From positions 4,712,001 through 4,776,000 of the forward strand of contig CATNEN010000007.1 in NCBI GenBank assembly GCA_950097015.1: 64,000 bases of DNA, read 5' to 3'. The notes below the pieces were generated by a model that was not told the DNA's origin, made no database searches, and saw only the letters and a list, made by a program, of their open reading frames with translations. This DNA comes from Macrostomum hystrix (Eukaryota > Animalia > Platyhelminthes). The position numbers and the translations under genes were made by a program. Shown one piece after another: positions 10,723 through 64,000 of the stretch (positions are counted from its first letter, which is position 1; the number at the start of each line of letters is the position of its first letter).

Positions 10723-11084
10723 GGACTGCGTTTGCCGCTGGATTTGGGAAGTGCATGCAGTTGGAGAGAGCCGTGGGCCAGTTTTAGAACCCCTACCCAG
10801 AAGCTGCAGCAATGGCCTATTCAGTCCGCTTGTTTAACGAAATCCACTAGTGGTGACTTTTATAGGGCAATTCGATGCGACTTGTGAAGTTGTTTTTGTA
10901 AGAAAAACTGTCCGAATTCAAAATGCTAATTCTGCGTCTGAACTCTGAATTCTTAGTTCTCGAACTTTTTCAAATCTCCCATTATTATCCTAAATCTCCC
11001 ATTTCCGAAATTCCAGACAACTACGAGCTAAATCCCCTTTTCTACAATTACGAAGAACTTATTCTTTCGTAGGCAATTTGAAAA

Positions 11085-14000: not shown

Positions 14001-14565
14001 AAATCCCACTCAGTAATCTAAAATCCCACTCAGTAATAAAAAATCCCACTCAGTAATAAAAAATCCCACTCAGTAATCTAAAATCCCACTAAGTAATCTA
14101 AAATCCCACTCAGTAATCTAAAATCCCACTCAGTAATAAAAAAATCCCACTCAGTAATAAAAAATCCCACTCAGTATTCTAAAATCCCACTCAGTAATCA
14201 AAAATCCCACTCAGTATTCTAAAATCCCACTCAGTAATCAAAAATCCCACTCAGTATTCTAAAATCCCACTCAGTAATCTAAAATCCCACTCAGTAATAA
14301 AAAATCCCACTCAGTAATAAAAAATCCCACTCAGTAATCTAAAATCCCACTAAGTAATCTAAAATCCCACTCAGTAATCTAAAATCCCACTCAGTAATAA
14401 AAAATCCCACTCAGTAATAAAAAATCCCACTCAGTATTCTAAAATCCCACTCAGTAATCAAAAATCCCACTCAGTATTCTAAAATCCCACTCAGTAATCA
14501 AAAATCCCACTCAGTAATCTAAAATCCCACTCAGTAATCTAAAAACCCACTCAGTATTCTAAAAT
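11085..14565. repeat. 20-bp satellite (AAAATCCCACTCAGTAATCT) with higher-order structure
   Basis: About 170 units. Diagnostic variants recur at a 1020-bp period. Confidence 0.97.
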
Positions 14566-34076: not shown

Positions 34077-34263
34077 TTGGCTGCTTGATTGGTGCCAGAA
34101 ATAGGCACAGTCTGGCACTGAAATAGTTCATTGAAAGGCACAAATTAGATGATGAGGCATTCAAGTACATTTGGCTGCTTGATTGGTGCCAGAAATAGGC
34201 ACAGTCTGGCACTGAAATAGTTCATTGAAAGGCACAAATTAGATGATGAGGCATTCAAGTACA
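34073..34263. repeat. Exact 94-bp tandem duplication covering the lamin start-codon context
   Basis: 34074-34169 is repeated at 34168-34263. Confidence 0.92.
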
Positions 34264-34629
34264 CGACCGATTGCATATTTACTTCTGCCTTTTACCCAGT
34301 CAAAAAAGTCCATGTGTGGCTTTATAAATCTAAATTGCAAAAGCATTTCTGTTTATATAGTTTTTATGTTGCTTGTTTTCTAGATGCCATTCTAGGAAGT
34401 TTAAAATAAGACTTTAAATGTTAAAAAAGTTATTGAAAATTTTCAGTTTCAGAGGAGTCCAAAGACAAGCATAGTAGCCAACTAAAACCTTTGATTTTGC
34501 CAAGCTATTCACTCTTACTGATAGTAACCACAGCTAGAATGTTAAGCTGGGACAGATAGCATATTAGACAAATTTTCATGTATTTTCATTAACTCTATCA
34601 CTATATTCTTCAGCAAGAGCTAATTACAT

Positions 34630-38607: not shown

Positions 38608-39692
38608 CTCCCAGCTGCAGAGAACTAATTCCTCCCCCCAGTAGCAGAGAACTAATTCCCCCCAGCAGCAGAGATCTAATTCCCCCCAGCAGCAGAGATC
38701 TAATTCTCCCCAGCAGCAAAGAACTAATTTCCCCCAAGCAGCAGAGAACTAATTTCCCCCCAGCAGCAGAGGACTAATTCCCCCCCCCAGCAGCAGAGGA
38801 CTAATTCCCCCCTAGCAGCAGAGAACTAATTCCCCCCCCAGCAGCAGAGGACTAATTCCCCCCCCCCAGCAGCAGAGGACTAATTCCCCCCCCAGCAGCA
38901 GAGGACTAATTCCCCCCTAGCAGCAGAGAACTAATTCCCCCCCAGCAGCAGAGGACTAATTCCCCCCTAGCAGCAGAGAACTAATTCCCCCCCCAGCAGC
39001 AGAGGACTAATTCCCCCCTAGCAGCAGAGAACTAATTCCCCCCCCCAGCAGCAGAGAACTAATTCCGGCAATGTTGAGGTTTCCTTCGCGATATTATTTT
39101 TCAAATGGATTTGTTGCAGACCGGTCCGCTGCTACCCTGATGCCAATCATCCAGCGGCATGTCCTACCTGGCAGCCGCATCCTCACAGATGGCTGGCTTG
39201 CATACGCTGGCCTGGCAAACCATGCTGTTGTCAATCATCGGCTGCACTTTGTTGACCCACAGGATGGTACAGTGCACACAAACACCATTGAGGGGACCTG
39301 GGCCCATGCAAAGGCGAAGTTCAGGTCCATGTATGGAACCTCGGCCGGACTCTTTGAAAGCCACCTGGAGGAATTTCTCTGGCACCGCCTGTACCCGGCC
39401 AATGCTTTTGGAGCTGTACTGTACTGGGTGTCACACTACTACCCACTGTGACTTCTCTGTGTCTGTCTGTCTCTGTGAACTAAAACTGCCCTGAACTGTT
39501 TATCATTATCGTTGTTTATCTTTGTTTATCGTTGTTTATTGTTGATATTACGTCATATTAATCATCTCCATGGATACGCAAATTTCTCAAATCCATTTGA
39601 AAAATAATATCGCGAAAGAAACCTCAACATTGCCCTAATTCCTCCCAGCAGCAAAGAACTAATTCCCCCAGCAACAAAGAACTAATTTCTCC
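38608..39692. repeat. ~24-bp minisatellite (CAGCAGAG[A/G]ACTAATTCCCCCC) interrupted by a Merlin element
   Basis: Units with variable C-run length at 38608-39066 and 39635-39692. Confidence 0.9.
39067..39634 (+). mobile_element. Merlin/IS1595-like DNA transposon, internally deleted non-autonomous copy
   Basis: 47-bp TIRs beginning GGCAATGTTG (1 mismatch), 8-bp TSD CTAATTCC (39059-39066 / 39635-39642). The interior encodes only a C-terminal IS1595-type transposase piece (RSAATL.PII..HV.PGS.I.TDGW.AY...VNH...FVDP..G.HTNTIEG.W). Confidence 0.9.
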
Positions 39693-42158: not shown

Positions 42159-44098
42159 TTCGGAATCATTTGTGTGTGCTTCAAATTGATCGGAGTTTAG
42201 CTTGCGTGCTTATTATTCTAGTGGAGAGCTTTGAAATGCGTACGATGTACTTAGCTCTGACAATGTGCCATCAACCCCAGCTAAAAAAGGACAGCCTCAA
42301 TTTGTTCACCAGGCCGTAGTCGTAGATTGACTGCATATTTTAGCAACAATACAAGCACATTGTACAAGCACCAGGAGAATTGTACTACCCTAGTGGCTGA
42401 ACTTGGTGTTTATTTTAGAAAAATGCTACTCGTGAAATTTATTTTGTGAACCAGCCCCCCCTGTTTCTGGTAGCCACAGAGGATCAGCCCCCCTTGTTCT
42501 GTAAGCTACAGAGGATCAGCCCTCCTGTTTCTGGTAGCTACAGAGGATCAGCCCTCCTGTTTCTGGTAGCTACAGAGGATCAGCCCTCCTGTTTCTGGTA
42601 GCTACAGAGGATCAGCCCTCCTGTTTCTGGTAGCTACAGAGGATCAGCCCCCCCCTGTTTCTGGTAGCTACAGAGTATCAGCCCCCCCTGTTTCTGGTAG
42701 CTACAGAGTATCAGCCCCCCTTGTTCTGTTAGCTACAGAGGATCAGCCCTCCTTGTTCTGGTAGCTACAGAGTATCAGCCCCCCTTGTTCTGTTAGCTAC
42801 AGAGGATCAGCCCTCCTGTTTCTGGTAGCTACAGAGGATCAGCCCTCCTGTTTCTGGTAGCTACAGAGGATCAGCCCTCCTGTTTCTGGTAGCTACAGAG
42901 GATCAGCCCTCCTGTTTCTGGTAGCTACAGAGGATCAGCCCCCCTGTTTCTGGTAGCTACAGAGTATCAGCCCCCCTTGTTCTGTTAGCTACAGAGGATC
43001 AGCCCTCCTTGTTCTGGTAGCTACAGAGGATCAGCCCCCCTTGTTCTGTTAGCTACAGAGGATCAGCCCTCCTGTTTCTGGTAGCTACAGAGGATCAGCC
43101 CTCCTGTTTCTGGTAGCTACAGAGGATCAGCCCTCCTGTTTCTGGTAGCTACAGAGGATCAGCCCTCCTGTTTCTGTTAGCTACAGAGGATCAGCCCTCC
43201 TTGTTCTGTTAGCTACAGAGGATCAGCCCTCCTTGTTCTGTTAGCTACAGAGGATCAGCCCTCCTGCTTCTGGTAGCTACAGAGGATCAGCCCTCCTTGT
43301 TTCTTGTAGCTACAGAGGATCAGCCCTCCTGTTTCTGGTAGCTACAGAGGATCAGCCCTCCTGTTTCTGGTAGCTACAGAGGATCAGCCCCCCTGTTTCT
43401 GGTAGCTACAGAGTATCAGCCCCCCTTGTTCTGTTAGCTACAGAGGATCAGCCCTCCTTGTTCTGGTAGCTACAGAGGATCAGCCCCCCTTGTTCTGTTA
43501 GCTACAGAGGATCAGCCCTCCTGTTTCTGGTAGCTACAGAGGATCAGCCCTCCTGTTTCTGGTAGCTACAGAGGATCAGCCCTCCTGTTTCTGGTAGCTA
43601 CAGAGGATCAGCCCTCCTGTTTCTGGTAGCTACAGAGGATCAGCCCCCCCTGTTTCTGGTAGCTACAGAGTATCAGCCCCCCTTGTTCTGTTAGCTACAG
43701 AGGATCAGCCCTCCTGTTTCTGGTAGCTACAGAGGATCAGCCCTCCTGTTTCTGGTAGCTACAGAGGATCAGCCCTCCTGTTTCTGGTAGCTACAGAGGA
43801 TCAGCCCTCCTGTTTCTGGTAGCTACAGAGGATCAGCCCTCCTTGTTTCTTGTAGCTACAGAGGATCAGCCCTCCTTGTTCGGTTAGCTACAGAGGATCA
43901 GCCCTCCTTGTTTCTGGTAGCTACAGAGGATCAGCCCCCCTTGTTCTGTTAGCTACAGAGGATCAGCCCTCCTGTTTCTGTTAGCTACAGAGGATCAGCC
44001 CTCCTTGTTTCTGGTAGCTACAGAGGATCAGCCCCCCTTGTTCTGTTAGCTACAGAGGATCAGCCCTCCTGTTTCTGTTAGCTACAGAGGATCAGCCC

Positions 44099-47000
44099 TA
44101 GGGTTTGCTATTACCGGTCCTTATCTCATTACCGGTAATTCGATAATATCTTTTTTATTTACCGGTAATTACCGGTAATTACCGGTAAACATGCAGTATT
44201 GCTATACTTTAATTCACTAAAAACGTCTTTGTTGCTCCCTTCTTAGAAAACATTAAAAAATTATGGTTGGGATGATAAGTGAGAATCGTAGGCATGTATA
44301 TTTGCACTATTCATTGCTCGAATTTCAATTTTTGTAGCCTTATAAAAAGTGTACCATATTTTCTTTAGACCGTATTCCTATCGCTGTAAATTGTAATATT
44401 TCACGTAAAGATCATTGCCATTAAAACTAACTCGGAGTCGAACCCATTCATTGATCCGCGACCGCCACTGTACTATATATAATTGAGATTTGAGCCTTTG
44501 AGACAGATACTTGTACAATTTTATTATAGTGGACAATGTGGTAGACTGGGAGTGGATTAAAATTGCGCAATAGTTTTGAACTGAATTCGCAAATTACTTT
44601 GAAATGTTCATGTTACAGCGCAGAAAGTTAAGGCAGTCAAGAGTGCTGTCCGAAAGTCGTGAACGCAGCCTTGTGCACAGATTGCCGGCAGTAGAAAATG
44701 CACGCTCCGACTCCACAGATGTAGGTGGTATGGTCAATAGCAGTTGGTAAACCTTGCTCATGTAGAAGCCTCGCTTGCCACTGTGTTCGGCCGCAGAGAG
44801 TTCGTTGAGGAGCACAGACGACAGGTCCTTCTGATGCATACTTTGAATTTCAGATTCAGGCAGCTTCATTGAGTCTTTGACTGCCTTCTGAAGTCTAAGT
44901 AGCACATCTGTGTCACTGACACTGTCAATGTCAACAGCACCATTTGGCGATGCCGATGGGACATCAGACCGCAGTTCAGTCGTCGCTGCAGCTAGCGCTT
45001 CATGGTCTATTTCATTTTCAACGACCAGGTTTAGTCTTGTAAGCAGAGAGCAGCAGTAGGTCTTGATTGATTGCTTTTTTGCCAGCCGTCTCTGTGGACT
45101 GTGCAAGTACTGAAGTACCACAGAATCGTTAGTATAGCGTTCTTGTACAATTCGCTGCTCGATTGCCAGTTTCAGATGTTTGCTTAGTTCAGACTTGTGC
45201 TTGTTGCTATCCATCTCTAGCTCGGTTATTAAAAATTTCACGACTGCTTCGGCCTCGATCAGATTTGAGTCCCTCCGAGACAGGGAAAGTACGGCAGCTT
45301 TCACAGGTTTTAGTGCGCGTACAACAGAAGCTACCACTTGGAAGTCGCTCTCACTTAGCCTGTCGCATGACCTAATGTTGACGTCAATCTGCGCTTTCTC
45401 AACACTCGCGCTAACTAGAAGGATGCGATCCAGCATGTCCACCAAGCTGTTCCATCTGGTCTTGCAATCCAAAATGAGTCGCCTGCAGGACACTTGGGGG
45501 ATCTGTTGTGCAATGTGGTTTTCCAGTATCTCTGAGCTCTTAGGAGACTTCCGAAAAACCCGAATCACGGATCTGACTTTTCTTATTGTTTCAGCAATTG
45601 AGCTCAGCGGTGTCACAGTCAAACAAGCAGCTGTAGACAGCATCGACTCCACGACGTCCGTTTCTTGTCCGTCATGATGATCAATTACAAGACCTTCGTT
45701 GAGATCACTGTCAGAATCTTCGTCGGAATCGTCCTCAACATTCACAATTGGATGGTGGTCCTCGCCGTCGGATCCTGAACTCGGTCCAATAGCGGCTCTC
45801 TGCACTGGAGTTACTTTCTCGTACAAAACGTCCAGTACAGCCAGTTGCAGTCCATGGCTGTAGCACAGCTGCTGTGAGATTGGAAGAATGAGCTGTCCAA
45901 CCTTCCGCATCATAGCGGCACCGTCTGTCGTGATGCAGACTATGTCTTGGGTCAAATTGAGTTCAAACTCAGTCAGCTTAGTGGACACCGCTTTTACACA
46001 ATTTTCTGCATTAAAGGTGCCGCTTACCCTTGACAGTCCTAGATTCCACAGCTTTTCACCGTCACGGATGTCGATATTCAAATACCGCACATTTCGGACC
46101 GACGTCCATTCATCAAATGTGAGGCTAAAGCGAGACCCGTTTTGCTTTCGCTGTAGTAGCTCTTTAGCTACATCGTTCTTCTTCTCACGGCCGTATTTCA
46201 ATACAAGTGACTTAATAGCGTTGGGTGACTTTGGCAGATCATGGCCGAGTGCAGCAAATGCTCGGCGCAAATCTTGCGAGGCTGCGAATGCCAGAAACGG
46301 CAATCCATGTCCTGCAGTCATGCGGGCCAACATCGCAGACATGGAAGTGTCGTTCTTGTTAGCAAAATAGCCAGTAATCGTATCTGCCAATAATAAGATT
46401 TAAAATATCACAGTGAGTAGTGGTACTAGTGGTGGGTAGTAGAGGTACATACTGATATACTGATACTGATGCTGATGCTGATGCTAATTTAACATGTATG
46501 ATGTAACTATTTATCAATTATTTTCCTCCCTAAATTTAGTTCATTAATCGCCCAGTATTGATTATAGAATGTAAAAAAGAGAAGTACTTACTTTTTGATG
46601 CCGATGGTGAAGCATAAGAAGACCCAACCACGTCAATGACAGTCTGGAGTCTAGCCATTTTTGTAGGGGGCTCGTTAACTTCCGCGATTGATTTCGGAAC
46701 CGTGGAAGTGGAATTGGCTTCTTTCTTGTGAATTCGCTTAAGGTGGCTCCGCAATCCACTGGTAGATCCACCTTCGCACTTTATGACTGCCTTACAGGCC
46801 GTACACTGTGCTGAAAGACCGTAGCGTTCGTTTTCCCATTCTCGCAAAAAATAGCTCCATATTTCGTTGTCGCTTCGAAACGGCTTGTACGTTTTCATTG
46901 AATGCGTGTTCTGTACTGTTAAAAATTATAATTGAAGTTATCTAGGCAGAGGCAGAGCCAAGCCAACTGAACAGAGTCACACTGACACTGAGCCAGAGCC

Positions 47001-47487: not shown

Positions 47488-49558
47488 ATCAGCCCTCCTT
47501 GTTCTGTTAGCTACAGAGGATCAGCCCTCCTTGTTCTGTTAGCTACAGAGGATCAGCCCTCCTGCTTCTGGTAGCTACAGAGGATCAGCCCTCCTTGTTT
47601 CTTGTAGCTACAGAGGATCAGCCCTCCTGCTTCTGGTAGCTACAGAGGATCAGCCCTCCTTGTTTCTGGTAGCTACAGAGGATCAGCCCTCCTGCTTCTG
47701 GTAGCTACAGAGGATCAGCCCTCCTTGTTTCTTGTAGCTACAGAGGATCAGCCCTCCTTGTTCGGTTAGCTACAGAGGATCAGCCCTCCTTGTTTCTGGT
47801 AGCTACAGAGGATCAGCCCCCCTTGTTCTGTTAGCTACAGAGGATCAGCCCCCCTTGTTCTGGTAGCTACAGAGGATCAGCCCCCCTTGTTCTGTTAGCT
47901 ACAGAGGATCAGCCCTCCTGTTTCTGTTAGCTACAGAGGATCAGCCCTCCTTGTTTCTGGTAGCTACAGAGGATCAGCCCCCCTTGTTCTGTTAGCTACA
48001 GAGGATCAGCCCTCCTGTTTCTGTTAGCTACAGAGGATCAGCCCTCCTTGTTCTGTTAGCTACAGAGGATCAGCCCTCCTTGTTCTGTTAGCTACAGAGG
48101 ATCAGCCCTCCTTGTTCTGTTAGCTACAGAGGATCAGCCCTCCTGCTTCTGGTAGCTACAGAGGATCAGCCCTCCTTGTTTCTTGTAGCTACAGAGGATC
48201 AGCCCTCCTGCTTCTGGTAGCTACAGAGGATCAGCCCTCCTTGTTTCTGGTAGCTACAGAGGATCAGCCCTCCTGCTTCTGGTAGCTACAGAGGATCAGC
48301 CCTCCTTGTTTCTTGTAGCTACAGAGGATCAGCCCTCCTTGTTCGGTTAGCTACAGAGGATCAGCCCTCCTTGTTTCTGGTAGCTACAGAGGATCAGCCC
48401 TCCTTGTTCTGTTAGCTACAGAGGATCAGCCCCCCTTGTTCTGTTAGCTACAGAGGATCAGCCCCCCTGTTTCTGGTAGCTACAGAGGATCAGCCCTCCT
48501 TGTTTCTGGTAGCTACAGAGGATCAGCCCCCCTTGTTCTGTTAGCTACAGAGGATCAGCCCTCCTTGTTTCTTGTAGCTACAGAGGATCAGCCCTCCTTG
48601 TTCGGTTAGCTACAGAGGATCAGCCCTCCTTGTTTCTGGTAGCTACAGAGGATCAGCCCCCCTTGTTCTGTTAGCTACAGAGGATCAGCCCCCCTTGTTC
48701 TGTTAGCTAGAGGATCAGCCCTCCTGTTTTTGGTAGCTACAGAGGATCAGCCCTCCTTGTTCTGTTAGCTACAGAGGATCAGCCCCCCTTGTTCTGTTAG
48801 CTAGAGGATCAGCCCTCCTGTTTTTGGTAGCTACAGAGGATCAGCCCTGCTGGTTCTGGTAGCTACACGGTATCCACCCTCCTGGTGGATAGCGAATAGC
48901 AAACGTAGTAGCCTAGTAGTTAGAGTGGTTGACTCACGACTTAAGGGTTAAGGGACTCACGGCATCGATTCCCGACTTCACTTGAACAATTGGAGTAATT
49001 GATTGATTAACAGTCTGGTTTAATGAAATATTGAAATAGCTGCGGCTGTGCTGTTGGCTGCTCATCTGGCCCAATTAGGGCAATGTGTAGTAAATTATTG
49101 TTTTATGTATTGAGGCGCACAAAAAGAAACAAAACTTTCAAATACGTGCCTGGAGGTATTATTATTAATTAATGCTTAATTATTCTAAGTGGCAGAATTT
49201 TTTACCCTGATTTTGAGACAACTTGCAGTCAAGCATCGACTTGGGGAAATTGTGCCCACCGAACAAAGTATTTCGTCAGCCCAACGTATACAGCACGTTA
49301 GATAGCGAAATCTCATGATTCCCAACTTTGCCCCATAGCGACGCCCACAAATGTGAACACGCATTCCCAAAGTTTTTTTGTTTACGACAAGCAGGGCTTC
49401 CCATAGCACGGGAAGGCATTCACATATCGAAATCTATGTGAGACCAGAGGCTCCCATTTCTGTGAGCACCAAGCAGCCACCCCAACCAATTGGGGTTAGT
49501 GTTAGGCTGCTGCGCTTATCGCTATGTGAAGCTCTGAAGAAACCAAAAATAGCTCGCC

Positions 49559-49583
49559 GTGTGCAGTCTCCGAAGGCTATAAA
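49559..49583 (+). promoter_or_regulatory. MRE core (TGCACAC, reverse strand) plus TATA box upstream of the 360-aa MT-like ORF
   Basis: GTGTGCA at 49559-49565 matches the TGCRCNC consensus. TATAAA at 49578-49583 lies ~110 nt before the ATG. Confidence 0.6.
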
Positions 49584-49689
49584 TGCAGCACACCTGAGGC
49601 ACCCAGGAAATCCTCAAGAAACTCGACCAAGCGATCCAGCTCGACAATCTAAAGCCAGAAATTAGCAACACAAGCCAACAAAGACGGTA

Positions 49690-50772
49690 ATGGAATCACA
49701 AGAGAAACCACAGTGCAAGTGCGACACCTGCGAATGCAAGAACTGCAAGTGCGAGACCTGCGAATGCAAGAACTGCAAGTGTGAGAACTGCAAATGCAAG
49801 AACTGCAAGTGCGAGACCTGCGAATGCAAGAACTGCAAGTGTGAGAACTGCGAATGCAAGAACTGCAAGTGCGAGAATTGCGAATGCAAGAACTGCAAGT
49901 GCGAGAACTGCGAATGCAAGAACTGCAAGTGCGAGACCTGCGAATGCAAGAACTGCAAGTGTGAGACCTGCGAATGCAAGAACTGCAAGTGCGAGACCTG
50001 CGAATGCAAGAACTGCAAGTGTGAGACCTGCGAATGCAAGAACTGCAAGTGCGAGAACTGCGAATGCAAGAACTGCAAGTGCGACACCTGCGAATGCAAG
50101 AACTGCAAGTGTGAGACCTGCGAATGCAAGAACTGCAAGTGCGAGACCTGCGAATGCAAGAACTGCAAGTGTGAGACCTGCGAATGCAAGAACTGCAAGT
50201 GCGAGAACTGCGAATGCAAGAACTGCAAGTGCGACACCTGCGAATGCAAGAACTGCAAGTGCGACACCTGCGAATGCAAGAACTGCAAGTGCGAGAACTG
50301 CGAATGCAAGAACTGCAAGTGCGAGAACTGCGAATGCAAGAACTGCAAGTGCGAGAACTGCGAATGCAAGAACTGCAAGTGCGAGAACTGCGAATGCGAG
50401 AACTGCAAGTGCGACACCTGCGAATGCAAGAACTGCAAGTGCGAGAACTGCGAATGCAAGAACTGCAAGTGCGACACCTGCGAATGCAAGAACTGCAAGT
50501 GCGAGAACTGCGAATGCAAGAACTGCAAGTGCGAGAACTGCGAATGCAAGAACTGCAAGTGCGAGAATTGCGAATGCAAGAACTGCAAGTGCGAGACCTG
50601 CGAATGCAAGAACTGCAAGTGCGAGAATTGCGAATGCAAGAACTGCAAGTGCGAGACCTGCGAATGCAAGAACTGCAAGTGCGAGACCTGCGAATGCAAG
50701 AACTGCAAGTGCGAGAACTGCGAATGCAAGAACTGCAAGTGCGAGACCGGTGAATGCAAGAACTGCAAGTGA
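49690..50772 (+). CDS. Long repeat-built metallothionein-like protein A, copy 1 (360 aa, ~140 Cys)
   Basis: ATG, an 8-aa leader, then 35 units of CKC[E/D][T/N]CECKN. The 30-bp unit has no indels. No aromatic or hydrophobic residues and no signal peptide. Upstream MRE+TATA and downstream AATAAA (51032). Confidence 0.8.
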   Translation: MESQEKPQCKCDTCECKNCKCETCECKNCKCENCKCKNCKCETCECKNCKCENCECKNCKCENCECKNCKCENCECKNCKCETCECKNCKCETCECKNCKCETCECKNCKCETCECKNCKCENCECKNCKCDTCECKNCKCETCECKNCKCETCECKNCKCETCECKNCKCENCECKNCKCDTCECKNCKCDTCECKNCKCENCECKNCKCENCECKNCKCENCECKNCKCENCECENCKCDTCECKNCKCENCECKNCKCDTCECKNCKCENCECKNCKCENCECKNCKCENCECKNCKCETCECKNCKCENCECKNCKCETCECKNCKCETCECKNCKCENCECKNCKCETGECKNCK

Positions 50773-51504
50773 AAGAACTTCAAAGTCAGGTGCTGCTTTA
50801 TAGTTGGCAAAAGCAATGAGAAGTTTTCTCATTTGCTGCAAAGCATATGCTCGTACATATATTCCGCCAATTTACCAAGACGATTTGAGGGACTATAAGC
50901 TTTCTCAAAATTGTGTTCACTTTATGTTGATTGCTTATTAAAATTCGGACACTGAAGCCATTGGTTTTCTTATTTTTTAATCAGAGAAAATTGCTCTTAT
51001 CAAACGTACCTACTATGTTTGTACCGGAAATAATAAAATTTTTGAGCTGGTGTTGATTATTTTATAATATTTTCCTTCTGCCGATCCTGCTTTGATACGC
51101 AAATATTCACGCTGTAAAATTGTCATTATGCCCGTACAAACAGAACTTAAAACAAACAGTTTAAGTACATTTAATGTAATATGAAGCGACATTATTAAAA
51201 CAAAAAAATGAAAAGCTAATGAATTGATTCAATTGAGTAGATAGGTAAGCTGGCAAGCTTAAACACACCATCGGAAATGGATTCGCCTCAATCTAATGAA
51301 ATGTAAGAAAGAAAAGAAATCAACTGGAAACTGTACGAAAACTGGCATTTTAACTTCTAAATATAAAATTCGAAAATCTATATATTCTAAATCTTATATA
51401 CTAAAAATGAAAATATCAACTAAAAAGATAATCATGCGCTTCCACTGAATATATCCTGAAGGAATCCTGAAAGTATCATATCAGAGATAACCCCCCTTGA
51501 GGAT

Positions 51505-52610: not shown

Positions 52611-53120
52611 TGGAAGAAACCCAGCTGAAATGACACTGAAGACATCCGAAAAGGAACATATTTTACCCGGCTGAAGAGTGTAGTCGTCCTGAAGGAATCA
52701 GCTGGGATTCATTCATCATGAATCTTAACTCAAGTTATCATTTGCGAGCTATCCAATAGATACACGCATTGACTTACGAGTCCTTTTTCATGAAGCTTGT
52801 TGGTGTTTTAATATCTCATTGCGTCGATAGCAAACCAGTTTTTGCATACTCGAGCCCGCTCACATTGCCGCTCATGCAGAAAACCCCATTTATGTGAATC
52901 CGCATTCCCATCAAAGCTTGTACCAAGGCGATAAGCAGAAAGCGACTCCCATATTTTGGGAGCGCCCCGAGTTCTATGTGAGTCCAAACTGGGTTACAGC
53001 TTCAAACCAATTTGCAGCAGGTTTATGTGAAGCCTACCAGTCCTTATCGCATACTGACGGCGTGCCAAAGCCAAGAAACCATGACGGTGACCGGCACACA
53101 CCTCCTATTCAATTTTTCAC

Positions 53121-53126
53121 TATAAA
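53121..53126 (+). promoter_or_regulatory. TATA box candidate for the 818-aa MT-like ORF
   Basis: TATAAA 110 nt upstream of the ATG, a spacing very similar to gene A. No perfect MRE was seen nearby (only GGCACAC at ~53094). Confidence 0.45.
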
Positions 53127-53230
53127 GCTTAGCGGCTCCATGACATGCCAGAGCAAGCACTTAACAGGCTCTGTATAATCTATCTATTTTTCACCTTGCT
53201 AACACTCCTACAGCCACTGCAGCAACTATC

Positions 53231-55687
53231 ATGGAAATGGGTGACTGTGAAAAGTGCAAGAGCAACACATGCGGGTGCCGTGAATGCAAGTGCGAGAGCT
53301 GCAGTTGTAAGGACGGAGACTGCAAGGACTGCAAGTGTACTGACTGCAAGTGTACTGACTGCAAGTGCACCGACTGCAAGTGTACTGACAGCAAGTGCAC
53401 CGACTGCAAGTGCACTGACTGCAAGTGTTCCGACTGCAAGTGTACCGACTGCAAGTGTACCGATTGCAAGTGTACCGACTGCAAATGTACTGACTGCAAG
53501 TGTACCGACTGCAAGTGCACCGACTGCAAGTGTACCGACTGCAAGTGCACCGACTGCAAGTGCACCGACTGCAAGTGTACCGACTGCAAGTGCACCGACT
53601 GCAAGTGTACCGACTGCAAATGTACTGACTGCAAGTGCACCGACTGCAAGTGTACCGACTGCAAGTGTACCGACTGCAAGTGCACCGACTGCAAGTGCAC
53701 CGACTGCAAGTGTACCGACTCCAAGTGTGACACCCGCAAGTGCCGTGAATGCAAGTGCGAGAGCTGCAGTTGCAAAGACGGAGACTGCAAAGACTGCAAG
53801 TGCACCGACTGCAAGTGCACTGACTGCAAGTGTTCCGACTGCAAGTGTACCGACTGCAAGTGTACCGACTGCAAGTGCACCGACTGCAAGTGTACCGACT
53901 GCAAGTGTACCGACTGCAAGTGCACCGACTGCAAGTGCACCGACTGCAAGTGTACCGACTCCAAGTGTGACACCCGCAAGTGCCGTGAATGCAAGTGCGA
54001 GAGCTGCAGTTGCAAAGACGGAGACTGCAAAGACTGCAAGTGCACCGACTGCAAGTGCACTGACTGCAAGTGTTCCGACTGCAAGTGTACCGACTGCAAG
54101 TGTACCGACTGCAAGTGCACCGACTGCAAGTGCACCGACTGCAAGTGCACCGACTGCAAGTGTACCGACTGCAAGTGCACCGACTGCAAGTGTACCGACT
54201 GCAAATGTACTGACTGCAAGTGCACCGACTGCAAGTGTACCGACTGCAAGTGCACCGACTGCAAGTGCACCGACTGCAAGTGCACCGACTGCAAGTGCAC
54301 CGACTGCAAGTGTACCGACTGCAAGTGCACCGACTGCAAGTGTACCGACTGCAAATGTACCGACTGCAAGTGCACCGACTGCAAGTGTACCGACTGCAAA
54401 TGTACTGACTGCAAGTGCACCGACTGCAAGTGTACCGACTGCAAGTGTACCGACTGCAAGTGCACCGACTGCAAGTGCACCGACTGCAAGTGTACCGACT
54501 CCAAGTGTGACACCCGCAAGTGCCGTGAATGCAAGTGCGAGAGCTGCAGTTGCAAAGACGGAGACTGCAAAGACTGCAAGTGCACCGACTGCAAGTGCAC
54601 CGACTGCAAGTGCACTGACTGCAAGTGTTCCGACTGCAAGTGTACCGACTGCAAGTGTACCGACTGCAAGTGCACCGACTGCAAGTGTACCGACTGCAAG
54701 TGTACCGACTGCAAGTGCACCGACTGCAAGTGCACCGACTGCAAGTGTACCGACTCCAAGTGTGACACCCGCAAGTGCCGTGAATGCAAGTGCGAGAGCT
54801 GCAGTTGCAAAGACGGAGACTGCAAAGACTGCAAGTGCACCGACTGCAAGTGCACCGACTGCAAGTGTACCGACTGCAAGTGCACCGACTGCAAGTGCAC
54901 CGACTGCAAGTGCACCGACTGCAAGTGCACCGACTGCAAGTGTACCGACTGCAAGTGCACCGACTGCAAGTGTACCGACTGCAAATGTACCGACTGCAAG
55001 TGCACCGACTGCAAGTGTACCGACTGCAAATGTACTGACTGCAAGTGCACCGACTGCAAGTGTACCGACTGCAAGTGTACCGACTGCAAGTGCACCGACT
55101 GCAAGTGCACCGACTGCAAGTGTACCGACTCCAAGTGTGACACCCGCAAGTGCCGTGAATGCAAGTGCGAGAGCTGCAGTTGCAAAGACGGAGACTGCAA
55201 AGACTGCAAGTGCACCGACTGCAAGTGCACCGACTGCAAGTGCACTGACTGCAAGTGTTCCGACTGCAAGTGTACCGACTGCAAGTGTACCGACTGCAAG
55301 TGCACCGACTGCAAGTGCACCGATTGCAAGTGTACCGACTGCAAGTGCACCGACTGCAAGTGCACCGACTGCAAGTGTACCGACTGCAAGTGCTCCGACT
55401 GCAAGTGTACCGACTGCAAGTGTACCGACTGCAAGTGTACCGACTGCAAGTGTACTGACAGCAAGTGCACCGACTGCAAGTGTGACACCCGCAAGTGCCG
55501 TGAATGCAAGTGCGAGAGCTGCAGTTGCAAAGACGGAGACTGCAAAGACTGCAAGTGTTCCGACTGCAAGTGCTCCGACTGCAAGTGTACCGACTGCAAG
55601 TGTACCGACTGCAAGTGTACTGACAGCAAGTGCAATGACTGTAAGTGTGACACCTGCAAGTGCCGTGAATGCAAGTGCGAGAGCTGA
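53231..55687 (+). CDS. Giant modular metallothionein-like protein B (818 aa, ~40% Cys)
   Basis: Single ORF of (CKCTD)n interrupted by a CRECKCESCSCKDGDCKD module. The 15-bp unit has no indels and its variation is mostly synonymous. Only M,E,G,D,C,K,S,N,T,R are used. AATAAA at 56132. Confidence 0.8.
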   Translation: MEMGDCEKCKSNTCGCRECKCESCSCKDGDCKDCKCTDCKCTDCKCTDCKCTDSKCTDCKCTDCKCSDCKCTDCKCTDCKCTDCKCTDCKCTDCKCTDCKCTDCKCTDCKCTDCKCTDCKCTDCKCTDCKCTDCKCTDCKCTDCKCTDCKCTDCKCTDCKCTDSKCDTRKCRECKCESCSCKDGDCKDCKCTDCKCTDCKCSDCKCTDCKCTDCKCTDCKCTDCKCTDCKCTDCKCTDCKCTDSKCDTRKCRECKCESCSCKDGDCKDCKCTDCKCTDCKCSDCKCTDCKCTDCKCTDCKCTDCKCTDCKCTDCKCTDCKCTDCKCTDCKCTDCKCTDCKCTDCKCTDCKCTDCKCTDCKCTDCKCTDCKCTDCKCTDCKCTDCKCTDCKCTDCKCTDCKCTDCKCTDCKCTDCKCTDCKCTDSKCDTRKCRECKCESCSCKDGDCKDCKCTDCKCTDCKCTDCKCSDCKCTDCKCTDCKCTDCKCTDCKCTDCKCTDCKCTDCKCTDSKCDTRKCRECKCESCSCKDGDCKDCKCTDCKCTDCKCTDCKCTDCKCTDCKCTDCKCTDCKCTDCKCTDCKCTDCKCTDCKCTDCKCTDCKCTDCKCTDCKCTDCKCTDCKCTDCKCTDCKCTDSKCDTRKCRECKCESCSCKDGDCKDCKCTDCKCTDCKCTDCKCSDCKCTDCKCTDCKCTDCKCTDCKCTDCKCTDCKCTDCKCTDCKCSDCKCTDCKCTDCKCTDCKCTDSKCTDCKCDTRKCRECKCESCSCKDGDCKDCKCSDCKCSDCKCTDCKCTDCKCTDSKCNDCKCDTCKCRECKCES

Positions 55688-57491
55688 AGTTGCAAAGGAC
55701 GGAGACTGCAAAGACTGCAAGTGTTCCGACTGCAAGTGCTCCGACTGCAGGTGTGACACCTGCAAATTATAGTTCGAGAGCTGCGAGTGCGAGGACGTAG
55801 CCTGCATGCAATGATGGCATTAAAGGCTAAAGATAGCTATCACAAGTGCAATTCTAGAACTGACAGAAAATTTCGAAGTGGAAGAAACCTCGGTCTAACA
55901 TTATTTTGATTTACAATCAGCCATTAAGTGCTTTTTACGTTCATTTTTGAGGGAATAATATCTAATTTGAGTTACATAATATGCTGCATTGATTTGACTT
56001 CTTTATATTTTGCTGCTGTTGATTTTACTCGTACTTTCTTATTTATAGTTCACGTCCTTGCTTGATTTCGCAGCCATCTCCACTTTCAAGTTTGATTGCT
56101 TAAGACAGAGTGCACATTTCCAATTTTTTTAAATAAACGTTAATTTGAAGCTAGCTTCTAAATGGACTTCGGAAACGCGATGAGACACATGCAGATATTG
56201 TTAAGAACTTGGCAACGGCAAGCTTGCGGCCTTAGGCCTAACAACTTATAAGATTTATAAAAACCGCCATTTTGGAGTTAGATGAAATTGAGTCAAAATC
56301 AGTACAACAGAATCGTATACAATTTATCAATGTAATTGCTTAATGGATTATCGTAATTAATTGCTGACGATACATATAAATTTACTGAAACTGTGGCCGA
56401 TTGCAAGCTAATCCATTGTGCGACAGCTGTGGCAGCTCATAGCGAAGTACACAGTGTTGTAACGTTTTGAACAAAGGAACATACAGTTTTATTTGAAAAA
56501 ACTGTTCCGACGAGCAAGACAACTATGTGGTCGGCGACCGTTAAAATGCAGCGTGGTACAAACCGAAATTTTGTGCTCTTTAAAACCTGGAAATCGATAC
56601 AAAAAGCTGGAATTGACAGCGGCTGCACGCTGCACTGCAGTCATTTATATGTTGTATTGTATGTGTTTTCTCAATGAGTTCTCGGTCACCCCGCCCAGAT
56701 GAGTTTAAGAAAGTAGAACCACATAGTGAAGTTTTCTATACTATTTTAATAATATATAGGAGCTGCTCTGATCTGCTCTGCAGCCCTCAACAACCCAGAC
56801 TAGAGAATATTATATGTTTAACGACAACTTGCGTGTGAAAGCCACAAACCTTGGCTGGATCATCTCAAGCATCCTTAGAGACTTTCTGCAAACCTTTATA
56901 CAACGTGCCGAACACTGGGTGTGTATAGCTTTGCTTTCTTCTAAAATCGTTAATTCCAAAAACCGTAGATCGCTGCAAATAGTAGTCATCTTCGACAGCA
57001 GACGAAACAGTGTAAACACTGTAAAGCATCGAGTCACTGCTTCCGGAATCAAACCTAATAACCTTTAGGAAGCAAACCTAGATGTTATCCTTGATCATAT
57101 GTTACACTCGAAACAAAATCACCAAATCTCTTACGACGCTGTCGAATCTGCAAAGAAAATAATTTACGATAGAATCTCGGACTTGCGATAACTAAGTATT
57201 TTAACTAACAAATATACATACATGCTTTTGGGTCCTACAAGCATAAAATTGTCTGACAATTTTTTATGTAAATAACATTAATTGAAAAAATTCCGACTGG
57301 CAAAATAGTGCTTTTAAGCTATTTTGACTTAACAGGAACCTGAAAAAAAGTCTAAAAAGTTTTCTTGATTTATAAGTAACTTATTAGGCCCCTACTACTA
57401 AATAATTAAGCGTTGTGGTTCAGCAACAAGCGTATACGTTTTCCTGTCGTATTTAATATTAAATGTTAAATGTACTGTCATTTATAGACTA

Positions 57492-59250: not shown

Positions 59251-61609
59251 TTTCTGGTAGCTACAGAGGATCAGCCCTCCTGTTTCTGGTAGCTACAGAG
59301 GATCAGCCCTCCTGTTTCTGTTAGCTACAGAGGATCAGCCCTCCTTGTTCTGTTAGCTACAGAGGATCAGCCCTCCTTGTTCTGTTAGCTACAGAGGATC
59401 AGCCCTCCTGCTTCTGGTAGCTACAGAGGATCAGCCCTCCTTGTTTCTTGTAGCTACAGAGGATCAGCCCTCCTGTTTCTGGTAGCTACAGAGGATCAGC
59501 CCTCCTGTTTCTGGTAGCTACAGAGGATCAGCCCCCCTGTTTCTGGTAGCTACAGAGTATCAGCCCCCCTTGTTCTGTTAGCTACAGAGGATCAGCCCTC
59601 CTTGTTCTGGTAGCTACAGAGGATCAGCCCCCCTTGTTCTGTTAGCTACAGAGGATCAGCCCTCCTGTTTCTGGTAGCTACAGAGGATCAGCCCTCCTGT
59701 TTCTGGTAGCTACAGAGGATCAGCCCTCCTGTTTCTGGTAGCTACAGAGGATCAGCCCTCCTGTTTCTGGTAGCTACAGAGGATCAGCCCCCCCTGTTTC
59801 TGGTAGCTACAGAGTATCAGCCCCCCTTGTTCTGTTAGCTACAGAGGATCAGCCCTCCTGTTTCTGGTAGCTACAGAGGATCAGCCCTCCTGTTTCTGGT
59901 AGCTACAGAGGATCAGCCCTCCTGTTTCTGGTAGCTACAGAGGATCAGCCCTCCTGTTTCTGGTAGCTACAGAGGATCAGCCCTCCTTGTTTCTTGTAGC
60001 TACAGAGGATCAGCCCTCCTTGTTCGGTTAGCTACAGAGGATCAGCCCTCCTTGTTTCTGGTAGCTACAGAGGATCAGCCCCCCTTGTTCTGTTAGCTAC
60101 AGAGGATCAGCCCTCCTGTTTCTGTTAGCTACAGAGGATCAGCCCTCCTTGTTTCTGGTAGCTACAGAGGATCAGCCCCCCTTGTTCTGTTAGCTACAGA
60201 GGATCAGCCCTCCTGTTTCTGTTAGCTACAGAGGATCAGCCCTCCTTGTTCTGTTAGCTACAGAGGATCAGCCCTCCTTGTTCTGTTAGCTACAGAGGAT
60301 CAGCCCTCCTGCTTCTGGTAGCTACAGAGGATCAGCCCTCCTTGTTTCTTGTAGCTACAGAGGATCAGCCCTCCTGCTTCTGGTAGCTACAGAGGATCAG
60401 CCCTCCTTGTTTCTGGTAGCTACAGAGGATCAGCCCTCCTGCTTCTGGTAGCTACAGAGGATCAGCCCTCCTTGTTTCTTGTAGCTACAGAGGATCAGCC
60501 CTCCTTGTTCGGTTAGCTACAGAGGATCAGCCCTCCTTGTTTCTGGTAGCTACAGAGGATCAGCCCCCCTTGTTCTGTTAGCTACAGAGGATCAGCCCCC
60601 CTTGTTCTGGTAGCTACAGAGGATCAGCCCCCCTTGTTCTGTTAGCTACAGAGGATCAGCCCTCCTGTTTCTGTTAGCTACAGAGGATCAGCCCTCCTTG
60701 TTTCTGGTAGCTACAGAGGATCAGCCCCCCTTGTTCTGTTAGCTACAGAGGATCAGCCCTCCTGTTTCTGTTAGCTACAGAGGATCAGCCCTCCTTGTTC
60801 TGTTAGCTACAGAGGATCAGCCCTCCTTGTTCTGTTAGCTACAGAGGATCAGCCCTCCTTGTTCTGTTAGCTACAGAGGATCAGCCCTCCTGCTTCTGGT
60901 AGCTACAGAGGATCAGCCCTCCTTGTTTCTTGTAGCTACAGAGGATCAGCCCTCCTGCTTCTGGTAGCTACAGAGGATCAGCCCTCCTTGTTTCTGGTAG
61001 CTACAGAGGATCAGCCCTCCTGCTTCTGGTAGCTACAGAGGATCAGCCCTCCTTGTTTCTTGTAGCTACAGAGGATCAGCCCTCCTTGTTCGGTTAGCTA
61101 CAGAGGATCAGCCCTCCTTGTTTCTGGTAGCTACAGAGGATCAGCCCTCCTTGTTCTGTTAGCTACAGAGGATCAGCCCCCCTTGTTCTGTTAGCTACAG
61201 AGGATCAGCCCCCCTGTTTCTGGTAGCTACAGAGGATCAGCCCTCCTTGTTTCTGGTAGCTACAGAGGATCAGCCCCCCTTGTTCTGTTAGCTACAGAGG
61301 ATCAGCCCTCCTTGTTTCTTGTAGCTACAGAGGATCAGCCCTCCTTGTTCGGTTAGCTACAGAGGATCAGCCCTCCTTGTTTCTGGTAGCTACAGAGGAT
61401 CAGCCCCCCTTGTTCTGTTAGCTACAGAGGATCAGCCCCCCTTGTTCTGTTAGCTAGAGGATCAGCCCTCCTGTTTTTGGTAGCTACAGAGGATCAGCCC
61501 TCCTTGTTCTGTTAGCTACAGAGGATCAGCCCCCCTTGTTCTGTTAGCTAGAGGATCAGCCCTCCTGTTTTTGGTAGCTACAGAGGATCAGCCCTGCTGG
61601 TTCTGGTAG
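59251..61609. repeat. 32-34-bp minisatellite, duplicated copy with an empty hAT site at 60235-60242
   Basis: Same unit and variant order as the array at 43107-48862 minus the transposon. Confidence 0.95.
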
Positions 61610-62305
61610 CTACACGGTATCCACCCTCCTGGTGGATAGCGAATAGCAAACGTAGTAGCCTAGTAGTTAGAGTGGTTGACTCACGACTTAAGGGTTAAGG
61701 GACTCACGGCATCGATTCCCGACTTCACTTGAACAATTGGAGTAATTGATTGATTAACAGTCTGGTTTAATGAAATATTGAAATAGCTGCGGCTGTGCTG
61801 TTGGCTGCTCATCTGGCCCAATTAGGGCAATGTGTAGTAAATTATTGTTTTATGTATTGAGGCGCACAAAAAGAAACAAAACTTTCAAATACGTGCCTGG
61901 AGGTATTATTATTAATTAATGCTTAATTATTCTAAGTGGCAGAATTTTTTACCCTGATTTTGAGACAACTTGCAGTCAAGCATCGACTTGGGGAAATTGT
62001 GCCCACCGAACAAAGTATTTCGTCAGCCCAACGTATACAGCACGTTAGATAGCGAAATCTCATGATTCCCAACTTTGCCCCATAGCGACGCCCACAAATG
62101 TGAACACGCATTCCCAAAGTTTTTTTGTTTACGACAAGCAGGGCTTCCCATAGCACGGGAAGGCATTCACATATCGAAATCTATGTGAGACCAGAGGCTC
62201 CCATTTCTGTGAGCACCAAGCAGCCACCCCAACCAATTGGGGTTAGTGTTAGGCTGCTGCGCTTATCGCTATGTGAAGCTCTGAAGAAACCAAAAATAGC
62301 TCGCC

Positions 62306-62330
62306 GTGTGCAGTCTCCGAAGGCTATAAA
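62306..62330 (+). promoter_or_regulatory. MRE core plus TATA box, duplicated copy
   Basis: GTGTGCA at 62306-62312 and TATAAA at 62325-62330. Confidence 0.6.
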
Positions 62331-62436
62331 TGCAGCACACCTGAGGCACCCAGGAAATCCTCAAGAAACTCGACCAAGCGATCCAGCTCGACAATCTAAA
62401 GCCAGAAATTAGCAACACAAGCCAACAAAGACGGTA

Positions 62437-63519
62437 ATGGAATCACAAGAGAAACCACAGTGCAAGTGCGACACCTGCGAATGCAAGAACTGCAAGTGCG
62501 AGACCTGCGAATGCAAGAACTGCAAGTGTGAGAACTGCAAATGCAAGAACTGCAAGTGCGAGACCTGCGAATGCAAGAACTGCAAGTGTGAGAACTGCGA
62601 ATGCAAGAACTGCAAGTGCGAGAATTGCGAATGCAAGAACTGCAAGTGCGAGAACTGCGAATGCAAGAACTGCAAGTGCGAGACCTGCGAATGCAAGAAC
62701 TGCAAGTGTGAGACCTGCGAATGCAAGAACTGCAAGTGCGAGACCTGCGAATGCAAGAACTGCAAGTGTGAGACCTGCGAATGCAAGAACTGCAAGTGCG
62801 AGAACTGCGAATGCAAGAACTGCAAGTGCGACACCTGCGAATGCAAGAACTGCAAGTGTGAGACCTGCGAATGCAAGAACTGCAAGTGCGAGACCTGCGA
62901 ATGCAAGAACTGCAAGTGTGAGACCTGCGAATGCAAGAACTGCAAGTGCGAGAACTGCGAATGCAAGAACTGCAAGTGCGACACCTGCGAATGCAAGAAC
63001 TGCAAGTGCGACACCTGCGAATGCAAGAACTGCAAGTGCGAGAACTGCGAATGCAAGAACTGCAAGTGCGAGAACTGCGAATGCAAGAACTGCAAGTGCG
63101 AGAACTGCGAATGCAAGAACTGCAAGTGCGAGAACTGCGAATGCGAGAACTGCAAGTGCGACACCTGCGAATGCAAGAACTGCAAGTGCGAGAACTGCGA
63201 ATGCAAGAACTGCAAGTGCGACACCTGCGAATGCAAGAACTGCAAGTGCGAGAACTGCGAATGCAAGAACTGCAAGTGCGAGAACTGCGAATGCAAGAAC
63301 TGCAAGTGCGAGAATTGCGAATGCAAGAACTGCAAGTGCGAGACCTGCGAATGCAAGAACTGCAAGTGCGAGAATTGCGAATGCAAGAACTGCAAGTGCG
63401 AGACCTGCGAATGCAAGAACTGCAAGTGCGAGACCTGCGAATGCAAGAACTGCAAGTGCGAGAACTGCGAATGCAAGAACTGCAAGTGCGAGACCGGTGA
63501 ATGCAAGAACTGCAAGTGA
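62437..63519 (+). CDS. Long repeat-built metallothionein-like protein A, copy 2 (360 aa)
   Basis: Translation identical to 49690-50772 in the ORF track. Confidence 0.8.
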   Translation: MESQEKPQCKCDTCECKNCKCETCECKNCKCENCKCKNCKCETCECKNCKCENCECKNCKCENCECKNCKCENCECKNCKCETCECKNCKCETCECKNCKCETCECKNCKCETCECKNCKCENCECKNCKCDTCECKNCKCETCECKNCKCETCECKNCKCETCECKNCKCENCECKNCKCDTCECKNCKCDTCECKNCKCENCECKNCKCENCECKNCKCENCECKNCKCENCECENCKCDTCECKNCKCENCECKNCKCDTCECKNCKCENCECKNCKCENCECKNCKCENCECKNCKCETCECKNCKCENCECKNCKCETCECKNCKCETCECKNCKCENCECKNCKCETGECKNCK

Positions 63520-64000
63520 AAGAACTTCAAAGTCAGGTGCTGCTTTATAGTTGGCAAAAGCAATGAGAAGTTTTCTCATTTGCTGCAAAGCATATGCTCG
63601 TACATATATTCCGCCAATTTACCAAGACGATTTGAGGGACTATAAGCTTTCTCAAAATTGTGTTCACTTTATGTTGATTGCTTATTAAAATTCGGACACT
63701 GAAGCCATTGGTTTTCTTATTTTTTAATCAGAGAAAATTGCTCTTATCAAACGTACCTACTATGTTTGTACCGGAAATAATAAAATTTTTGAGCTGGTGT
63801 TGATTATTTTATAATATTTTCCTTCTGCCGATCCTGCTTTGATACGCAAATATTCACGCTGTAAAATTGTCATTATGCCCGTACAAACAGAACTTAAAAC
63901 AAACAGTTTAAGTACATTTAATGTAATATGAAGCGACATTATTAAAACAAAAAAATGAAAAGCTAATGAATTGATTCAATTGAGTAGATAGGTAAGCTGG

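Follow-up and report, generated by a model that had tools for sequence, protein, structure and literature searches.

Whether an open reading frame (ORF) that coincides with a minisatellite encodes a working protein, or is an array that merely happens to stay open, is the question raised by a locus of the flatworm Macrostomum hystrix. The locus lies in a stretch of 64,000 nucleotides (contig CATNEN010000007.1 of assembly GCA_950097015.1, positions 4,712,001 to 4,776,000 of the forward strand), hereafter called the window, and its central element, MT818, is an ORF of 818 uninterrupted codons, more than one third of which specify Cys. The window holds this ORF with its peculiar composition and internal architecture, paralogues of it, and a promoter-like layout upstream. 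To judge from these sequences, the chances are evenly poised that MT818 is a real, intronless and lineage-specific gene for a cytosolic, Cys-rich metal-thiolate binder resembling the metallothioneins (MTs). On this reading, the ORF would be transcribed and translated, its product would bind metal ions, and its possession might carry a selective benefit.

Composition and architecture of MT818 and its paralogue

MT818 runs on the forward strand from an ATG at 53231 to a TGA that ends at 55687, in agreement with the original prediction, which had been made from the letters of the window and had proposed an 818-aa, MT-like ORF with these limits. The predicted product has a mass of ~90 kDa and a pI of ~7.2. 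The prediction had estimated ~320 Cys, or ~40% of the chain; counting gives 303 (37.0%), together with 162 K, 153 D, 123 T, 32 S, 18 E, 14 R, 9 G, 2 M and 2 N. A, V, L, I, F, W, Y, H, P and Q are absent altogether, and the translated ORF has no signal peptide, just as the proposed lack of aromatic residues, aliphatic residues and a secretion signal would have it. The Cys residues form 140 CxC motifs and not a single CC. An MT-like reading is supported by this composition, since it fits the definition of an MT: high Cys arranged in CxC, Lys beside Cys, no aromatics and no His.

The ORF opens with a non-repeated N-terminal segment (53231-53326, 32 aa with 12 Cys), which holds a diverged copy of a linker that returns further on. 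It is followed by a 15-bp tandem array (53327-55753, forward strand), for which Tandem Repeats Finder (TRF) gives 161.7 copies with 84% matches and 1% indels, and which is organised in higher-order blocks. The unit, GAC TGC AAG TGC ACC, is translated as D C K C T, and the 124 canonical units of MT818 fall into 12 sequence variants. The earlier description of the ORF as (CKCTD)n holds in so far as these 15-bp units dominate, but MT818 is not a plain repeat. A 28-aa linker (..SKCDTRKCRECKCESCSCKDGDCKD..) recurs inside it at spacings of 155, 80, 180, 85, 125, 115 and 55 aa, and delimits eight blocks within which the unit is a pentapeptide with two Cys. Linkers 2-6 do not differ in their DNA, a sign of a very recent expansion of the array.

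The window contains a paralogue, MT360, in two copies on the forward strand. Copy 1 (49690-50772) encodes 360 aa with 140 Cys (39%), consists of 35 copies of a 30-bp unit (CKCETCECKN) and has a TATAAA at 49578. Copy 2 (62437-63519) is identical to it and lies inside a tandem segmental duplication (47488-51253 and 60235-64000). The period of this duplication is 12,747 bp, its two copies are 100% identical over 3,766 bp, and the second extends past the end of the window. Such a duplication is either very recent or a duplication made by the assembly. Despite its different 30-bp unit, MT360 keeps the C-x-C-x-x spacing of MT818, and a diverged version of the MT360 unit, CKCESCSCKD, is found in the linker of MT818. 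In all MT360 units but the final one, the four Cys codons vary only silently, while the non-Cys codons vary in the residue that they specify (T/N, E/D, E/K and K/E).

The MT360/MT818 locus is embedded in minisatellites and transposon remains. Over positions 1-64000, minisatellites make up ~51% of the window; the arrays number more than 30, and their periods range from 4 to 94 bp. Some of the arrays are several kb long, such as those at 11081-14565 (period 20) and 34624-37627 (period 43), and one 32-bp unit recurs at 42456-44099, 47488-48867 and 59251-61614.

The candidate coding frame and its flanks

The openness of the ORF is by itself uninformative, and is no more than chance would give, because five of the six frames across the MT818 array are open and other arrays of the window with a 3n period are likewise open in four or five frames. 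The original prediction had set the in-frame units of MT818 against neighbouring minisatellites that carry indels. This is true of some neighbours, but many have 0% indels by TRF and the contrast is not valid. The lack of indels requires no selection either, because the identical DNA of the linkers implies a very recent expansion.

The phase of the variation is more telling. The canonical 15-bp unit has seven variable sites, of which four are third codon positions (Fisher p = 0.10 by site, a weak test). The four transition-type sites (positions 6, 9, 12 and 15) all fall on silent third positions, and the remaining three sites change residues (C>S, T>S and T>N). In the 60-nt core of the linker, the N-terminal and the internal copies differ at three sites, again all third-position and silent. 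Transitions thus fall in one phase in seven cases out of seven (p ~0.0014, given independent events), and well-registered neighbouring arrays show no clustering of variants by phase. In the count of synonymous and non-synonymous variants among the units, which had been suggested as a check, all transitions are silent, the independent sites are few and three of the seven in the unit change a residue. The further claim that the variation is synonymous in the Cys frame only was mistaken, as one reverse-strand frame, (SVHLQ)n, has identical third positions and the same variants are silent there. The codons preferred in MT818 (TGC, AAG, GAC and ACC) agree with those of the filament and WD40 exons found elsewhere in the window.

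Several elements are placed around the ORF in a way that recalls a gene. Upstream motif A (ATGTGAA-NN-CGCATTCC; 52892-52908, forward strand) begins 339 nt before the ATG of MT818. It has three occurrences in the window (49351, 52892 and 62098), against 0.10 expected by chance, and each precedes a Cys-repeat ORF by exactly 339 nt. Upstream motif B (TCTATGTGAG-N-CCA; 52973-52986, forward strand), 258 nt before the same ATG, has just three matches in the window, one at -257/-258 of each Cys-repeat ORF, where chance would give 0.13. An additional ATGTGAR, the third, is found at 53025. Outside such short blocks, the similarity between the 5' flanks of MT818 and MT360 is low. A TATAAA box (53121-53126, forward strand) lies 110 nt before the MT818 ATG and its MT360 counterpart at 112 nt. 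Between this box and 53231 the only ATGs are those at 53140 and 53145, 19 and 24 nt past the box; since both probably sit at or before the inferred transcription start, no ATG of the predicted mRNA would precede the one at 53231, whose Kozak context is good (A at -3, G at +4). On the 3' side, an AATAAA poly(A) signal (56132-56137, forward strand) follows the stop by 445 nt, and an ATTAAA is present at 55819. Both the TATA box and the poly(A) signal of the original prediction are therefore in place.

The end of the ORF also bears on the choice of frame. In the last block, a TGA stands in place of the TGC found in the other copies of the linker, and an extra G follows 10-11 nt later (~55697-55698). 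In the degenerate repeat remnant beyond the stop (55688-55772, forward strand), this G shifts the frame, and frame +1 still reads ..KDGDCKDCKCSDCKCSDCRCDTCKL. Frame-breaking changes are confined to the sequence past the stop: the 2.4 kb upstream contain no indel and no stop, versus one indel and several substitutions in the 85 nt downstream. The stop and the extra G are not errors of the assembly, because a contig of run X5, which comes from another study, matches 55670-55909 without difference and confirms the TGA at 55685-55687. Taken together, the placement of the ATG and the TATA box, the third-position variation, the Cys spacing of the paralogue, the shared upstream motifs and the decay only after the stop are independent, indirect lines that favour the Cys frame as a genuine coding frame, and the MT-like interpretation of the original prediction is plausible and partly supported.

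Relatives, reads and rival explanations

A number of observations weigh against MT818 being an MT-like gene, and they concern its relatives, its regulation, its expression and its variation. A word-indexed search of 5.8 billion proteins with the whole of MT818 and with its aa 1-100 found no homologue, and no stand-alone small relative of its unit was found in the searches of that set. HMMER returned 1,765 matches among 1.84 billion representative proteins, all of them periodic and of low complexity. Among the best 150 of these matches, only two have at least 15% Cys, a yeast protein of 305 aa (HE650825.1) and a bacterial (CKCGE)n protein, and in sequence both look convergent. The ESM Atlas gave no usable match to the Cys-repeat protein, an exact-product look-up found neither MT818 nor MT360 on record, the degenerate DNA patterns of the two repeat units had 0 matches in metagenome contigs, and literal motif strings had 0 matches in 8 million papers. 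Rfam, run over the whole window, likewise gave 0 matches. The whole of MT818 matches none of the Pfam metallothionein families; the best of them, PF12749 (Metallothio_Euk), reaches 12.1 bits (E = 0.2) on the N-terminal 45 aa, against a cut-off of 22.

On the side of regulation and expression, the 500 bp upstream of MT818 contain no core (TGCRCNC) of the metal-response element (MRE), and the 3' untranslated regions of MT818 and MT360 are not alignable and have no detectable similarity. Not all animals use MTF-1 and MREs. In the window as a whole, MRE cores are fewer than chance would give (22 matches against 61 expected), and one of them, at 49559-49565 on the reverse strand, stands 13 nt before the TATA box of MT360 copy 1, a placement that recurs in the identical copy 2. 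Reads were compared over the 3' end (55440-56400), and none of the sequencing runs that contain the stretch is on record as RNA. Run X9, which is guessed to be RNA, has contigs only at 55440-55604 and 55954-56106, at a depth of 3-4; beyond the AATAAA at 56132 it has no contig. These contigs are compatible with a transcript or, equally, with sparse DNA of low coverage. Moreover, the variable sites of the array are few and possibly not independent, the array is so young, given its identical linkers, that being kept in frame requires no selection, and expansion in this region affects every kind of minisatellite, so that in MT818 it may reflect mutational drive rather than adaptation.

What kind of protein MT818 would be is also limited by the family tests. 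MTs are classically smaller than 10 kDa, and those above 100 aa are already called 'large'. High Cys in CxC motifs and a lack of aromatics and His are found in MT818, but its ~90 kDa lies far beyond any characterised MT and is not a low molecular weight. Its 37% Cys also exceeds the 16-32% that is standard for MTs (PMC4862169). Pfam PF25296, 'Decapeptide repeat region', is matched by MT818 with 88 bits and by MT360 with 66 bits, against a cut-off of 45, although no single stretch passes it; the bacterial (CKCGE)n protein scores 19 bits against the same family, and the papers that use the phrase 'decapeptide repeat' concern repeats without Cys (p180 and PfCERLI2). To go by sequence, this match is most likely an effect of periodicity and composition. 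MT818 is therefore called MT-like and placed outside the described MT families, because it resembles an MT by composition but falls short in the tests of sequence family.

If MT818 is a gene of this kind, its origin could be traced to a small ancestral gene with CxC-x2 decapeptides of the CKCESCSCKD type, which are still seen in the linker and in MT360. A 15-bp piece (CKCTD) would then have been amplified by the same unequal exchange or slippage that filled half of the region with minisatellites; larger blocks carrying the linker would have been copied next, and the latest step would be the duplication of the whole 12.7-kb MT360-MT818 pair. Metal binding by the protein would rest on its 140 CxC pairs, which have Lys beside them and whose thiolates would enclose Zn(II), Cd(II) or Cu(I) in clusters. 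Mammalian MT binds 7 M(II) with 20 Cys; for Cu(I), the ratio taken from characterised MTs is 20 Cys to 12. By arithmetic on 303 Cys, the nominal capacity of MT818 is ~104-106 divalent ions at the mammalian ratio or at that of BscMT1, a tunicate MT, and ~180 Cu(I), which bears out, as a nominal figure, the ~100 ions per chain that had been anticipated. A wider proposal can be held only tentatively: that the animal makes ~90-kDa and ~41-kDa chains of almost pure [CxC-x2]n, the largest and most Cys-dense MT-like proteins, each able to hold ~100 divalent ions and resized in real time by minisatellites and the 12.7-kb duplication, repeat instability being a fast route to capacity. A bolder version would have the regular pentapeptide fold into a solenoid whose continuous, Cys-lined core holds a chain of metal ions.

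Structural models of the two proteins are regular. AlphaFold2, run without an alignment on 53231-53980 (MT818) and 49690-50289 (MT360), predicts a strict five-residue strand pattern and a regular beta-solenoid for both Cys-repeat proteins, with pLDDT values of up to 98. Residues 60-150 of MT818 reach a pLDDT of 80-96, although two of the five models drop to 42; residues 1-200 of MT360 have a mean pLDDT of 95.7 and a pTM of 0.84. With the MT818 model, Foldseek returns beta-helices, including the pentapeptide-repeat proteins AlbG and MfpA (E 1e-4 to 1e-3); with the MT360 model it gives no significant match, and VIA-align places that model on autotransporter beta-helices (Z = 15, rmsd 3.1 over 199 residues). 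A bias of AlphaFold2 toward solenoids for perfect repeats is documented (PMC11795689), and for this reason we rejected the solenoids as evidence of fold. They are probably an artefact of the repeats, and a structural reading built on such models survives as a minority rival.

Two alternatives concern the array itself. A minisatellite may have run away in, or from, a small Cys-rich gene, leaving a giant ORF, whether tolerated, silent or turned into a pseudogene, with no length-dependent function. We judge this, the strongest of the rivals, somewhat unlikely, but it draws on much of what surrounds the ORF. Tandem repeats fill 51% of the window in more than 30 arrays, those with a 3n period are routinely open in four or five frames, the identity of linkers 2-6 marks a recent expansion in which the frame would be maintained without selection, a stop and a frameshift interrupt the last block, and neither expression evidence nor homologues were found. 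What such an array would not be expected to produce is the clustering of all transitions at third positions, the conservation of the MT360 Cys codons while the codons between them vary, the intact layout of ATG, TATA box and poly(A) signal with upstream motifs at fixed distances in both paralogues, or 2.4 kb without stop or indel when one indel is already present in the 85 nt past the stop. The other alternative is that the assembly is at fault, in the length of the array or in the 100% identical duplication, and that the true ORF is much shorter. The 3.8-kb duplicate is indeed 100% identical, and short-read contigs cannot span the array, none of the listed pieces crossing it. However, the irregular sizes of the blocks and the ordered pattern of the variants are atypical of a collapsed or inflated assembly, and runs from two other studies bear out the flanks and the stop; two DNA runs extend over 55720-56400 and further with no difference. 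In run X1, the summed contig depth is ~35,000 over the canonical units versus 136 in the flank, and although such a depth is no true copy number, a ratio of hundreds roughly fits a few hundred units in the genome. An assembly artefact of this kind is thus very unlikely.

Two further alternatives grant a protein but of another nature. MT818 could be real and yet no metal store, its Cys serving a structural or redox role, for instance in a beta-solenoid rod with a Cys-lined core or in a cross-linker of germ line or cuticle, like other tandemly clustered and fast-evolving Cys-repeat genes. The five-residue strand pattern of the models (pLDDT 80-96 in MT818 and a mean of 95.7 in MT360), their likeness to the beta-helices of AlbG, MfpA and the autotransporters, and the lack of both an upstream MRE and an MT family match in MT818 all speak for it. 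Yet two of the five MT818 models fall to a pLDDT of 42, the MT360 model has no significant Foldseek match, the chain has neither a signal peptide nor hydrophobic residues for a core, and the Pfam pentapeptide families (PF00805 and PF13599) find no match in the Cys frame, so that we consider this clearly unlikely. That a different frame is the coding one seems hardly credible. The reverse frame (53194-55695, reverse strand), read as a (SVHLQ)n pentapeptide-repeat protein, shares its silent third positions with the Cys frame and scores 218 bits with Pfam Pentapeptide_4 and 71 bits with Pentapeptide, but such scores are expected of any Leu repeat with a five-residue period and make a strong yet meaningless family match. 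It has no ATG (TTG only) and no downstream poly(A) signal on its strand, TTTATT being absent from the 700 nt upstream of the array. In MT360, the halves of the unit read VSHLQ and FLHSQ in this frame and the pentapeptide pattern is lost, so the feature kept across the paralogues is the Cys spacing and not the Leu pentapeptide. The +1 ORF (53145-55772, 875 aa), a (TASAP/TASVP)n sequence that would give a secreted, mucin-like protein, has a hydrophobic stretch at its start, beginning with the ATG at 53145. That ATG, however, is 24 nt past the TATA box, and in MT360 the frame has no ATG and opens with GTG; the variants fall at its second codon positions (A/V, P/L, S/N and T/I), and it reaches Cys-frame sequence at its end solely owing to the frameshift.

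Surroundings of the locus and comparison with known systems

Besides the Cys-repeat ORFs, the window contains other genes and mobile elements. Exons of an intermediate-filament or lamin-like gene lie on the reverse strand (28431-29279, 29433-29981 and 33462-34127), with Pfam Filament and Lamin Tail Domain matches, a long Ser/Ala-rich head and minisatellites between the exons. A WD40-repeat exon (8298-8759, reverse strand) scores 72 bits to PF00400. These exons mark the genome as that of an animal; a search of the ESM Atlas with the filament exon pointed no more closely than to Eukaryota, with Nematoda and Chordata the commonest labels. A frame of 980 codons (24034-26973, forward strand) with reverse transcriptase and RNase H belongs to a non-LTR retrotransposon, on both sides of which one 23-bp minisatellite is found (23659-24080 and 27075-28166). 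An intact-looking hAT transposase ORF of 601 aa (44597-46399, reverse strand) matches proteins of many animals with identities of no more than 45%, and a fragment at 39011-39448 (forward strand) carries an IS1595/ISXO2-like DDE transposase domain.

Research on MTs asks how large members arise and whether their capacity scales with repeat number (PMC8476144, PMC11645667, PMC13168519). If MT818 is expressed, the size record of MTs would be doubled, and the protein would represent a new architecture, an array of 2-Cys pentapeptides with higher-order blocks as opposed to concatenated domains of 9-12 Cys. It would also be a clean natural case of a coding minisatellite whose expansion creates a protein length that scales with function. 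If it is silent, it would exemplify how a genome prone to minisatellites can inflate an ORF without selection. Caution is also called for, as neither gene callers nor homology searches nor short-read transcriptomes reveal genes of this kind; a survey of chelicerate MTs met large, incomplete Cys-repeat transcripts and failed to resolve them (PMC13168519).

Large MTs of more than 100 aa, built from tandem repeats, have been described in tunicates, gastropods, fungi, ciliates and spiders (PMC8283569, PMC8476144, PMC4755600, PMC4862169, PMC13168519), and the expansion of tandem repeats is a recurrent route to them (PMC8476144). OdiMT2 of Oikopleura dioica has 399 aa with 123 Cys, and up to seven repeat units in one population (PMC8283569); BscMT1 of Botryllus schlosseri has 365 aa with 105 Cys and binds 36 Zn (PMC8476144). 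TmMT has 257 aa, Tetrahymena MTs up to 193 aa and the spider MT3L ~110 aa (PMC4755600, PMC4862169, PMC13168519). The original prediction had set a ceiling of a few hundred residues for multi-repeat MTs, which is where the literature puts it (365-399 aa), and had spoken of a possible record length; OdiMT2 and BscMT1 are the largest MTs characterised, and the protein predicted here would indeed have about double their length.

The tunicate MTs resemble MT818 in being large, Cys-rich (29-31%) and tandemly repeated, without aromatics. Their repeat number varies between populations, and their capacity scales with it (PMC8283569, PMC8476144). However, the tunicate unit is a complete 12-Cys domain of ~35-40 aa with CC, encoded by genes with introns, whereas MT818 is intronless and has a 2-Cys pentapeptide, no CC and blocks of 55-180 aa. 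Its length and Cys count are 2-2.5 times larger, and no sequence similarity to the tunicate proteins was detected. The ciliate Cu-MTs of subfamily 7b, from Tetrahymena, come close in motif, as they repeat CKC-x2-5-CxC, with Lys next to Cys and CKC making up most of the CxC (PMC4862169); they differ in having at most ~158-167 aa and 16-32% Cys, and in belonging to a protist lineage (PMC4862169). The CKC-x2-CxC motif common to MT818 and these proteins is a resemblance and not a homology. Pentapeptide-repeat proteins (PF00805/PF13599; AlbG, MfpA and Qnr) share the five-residue periodicity of MT818, but their consensus is A(D/N)LXX, and the Cys frame of MT818 misses their Pfam models and lacks a central Leu or Phe. 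The 9-10 domain MT of the gastropod Alinda biplicata and the fungal TmMT (257 aa) likewise gain capacity by joining repeated Cys modules (PMC7084494, PMC11645667, PMC4755600). Unlike those of MT818, these modules are 9-Cys beta domains or 7-Cys segments, with totals well under 400 aa. In the characterised large MTs, the repeated module is thus always a domain of 7-12 Cys, whereas the unit of MT818 has two.

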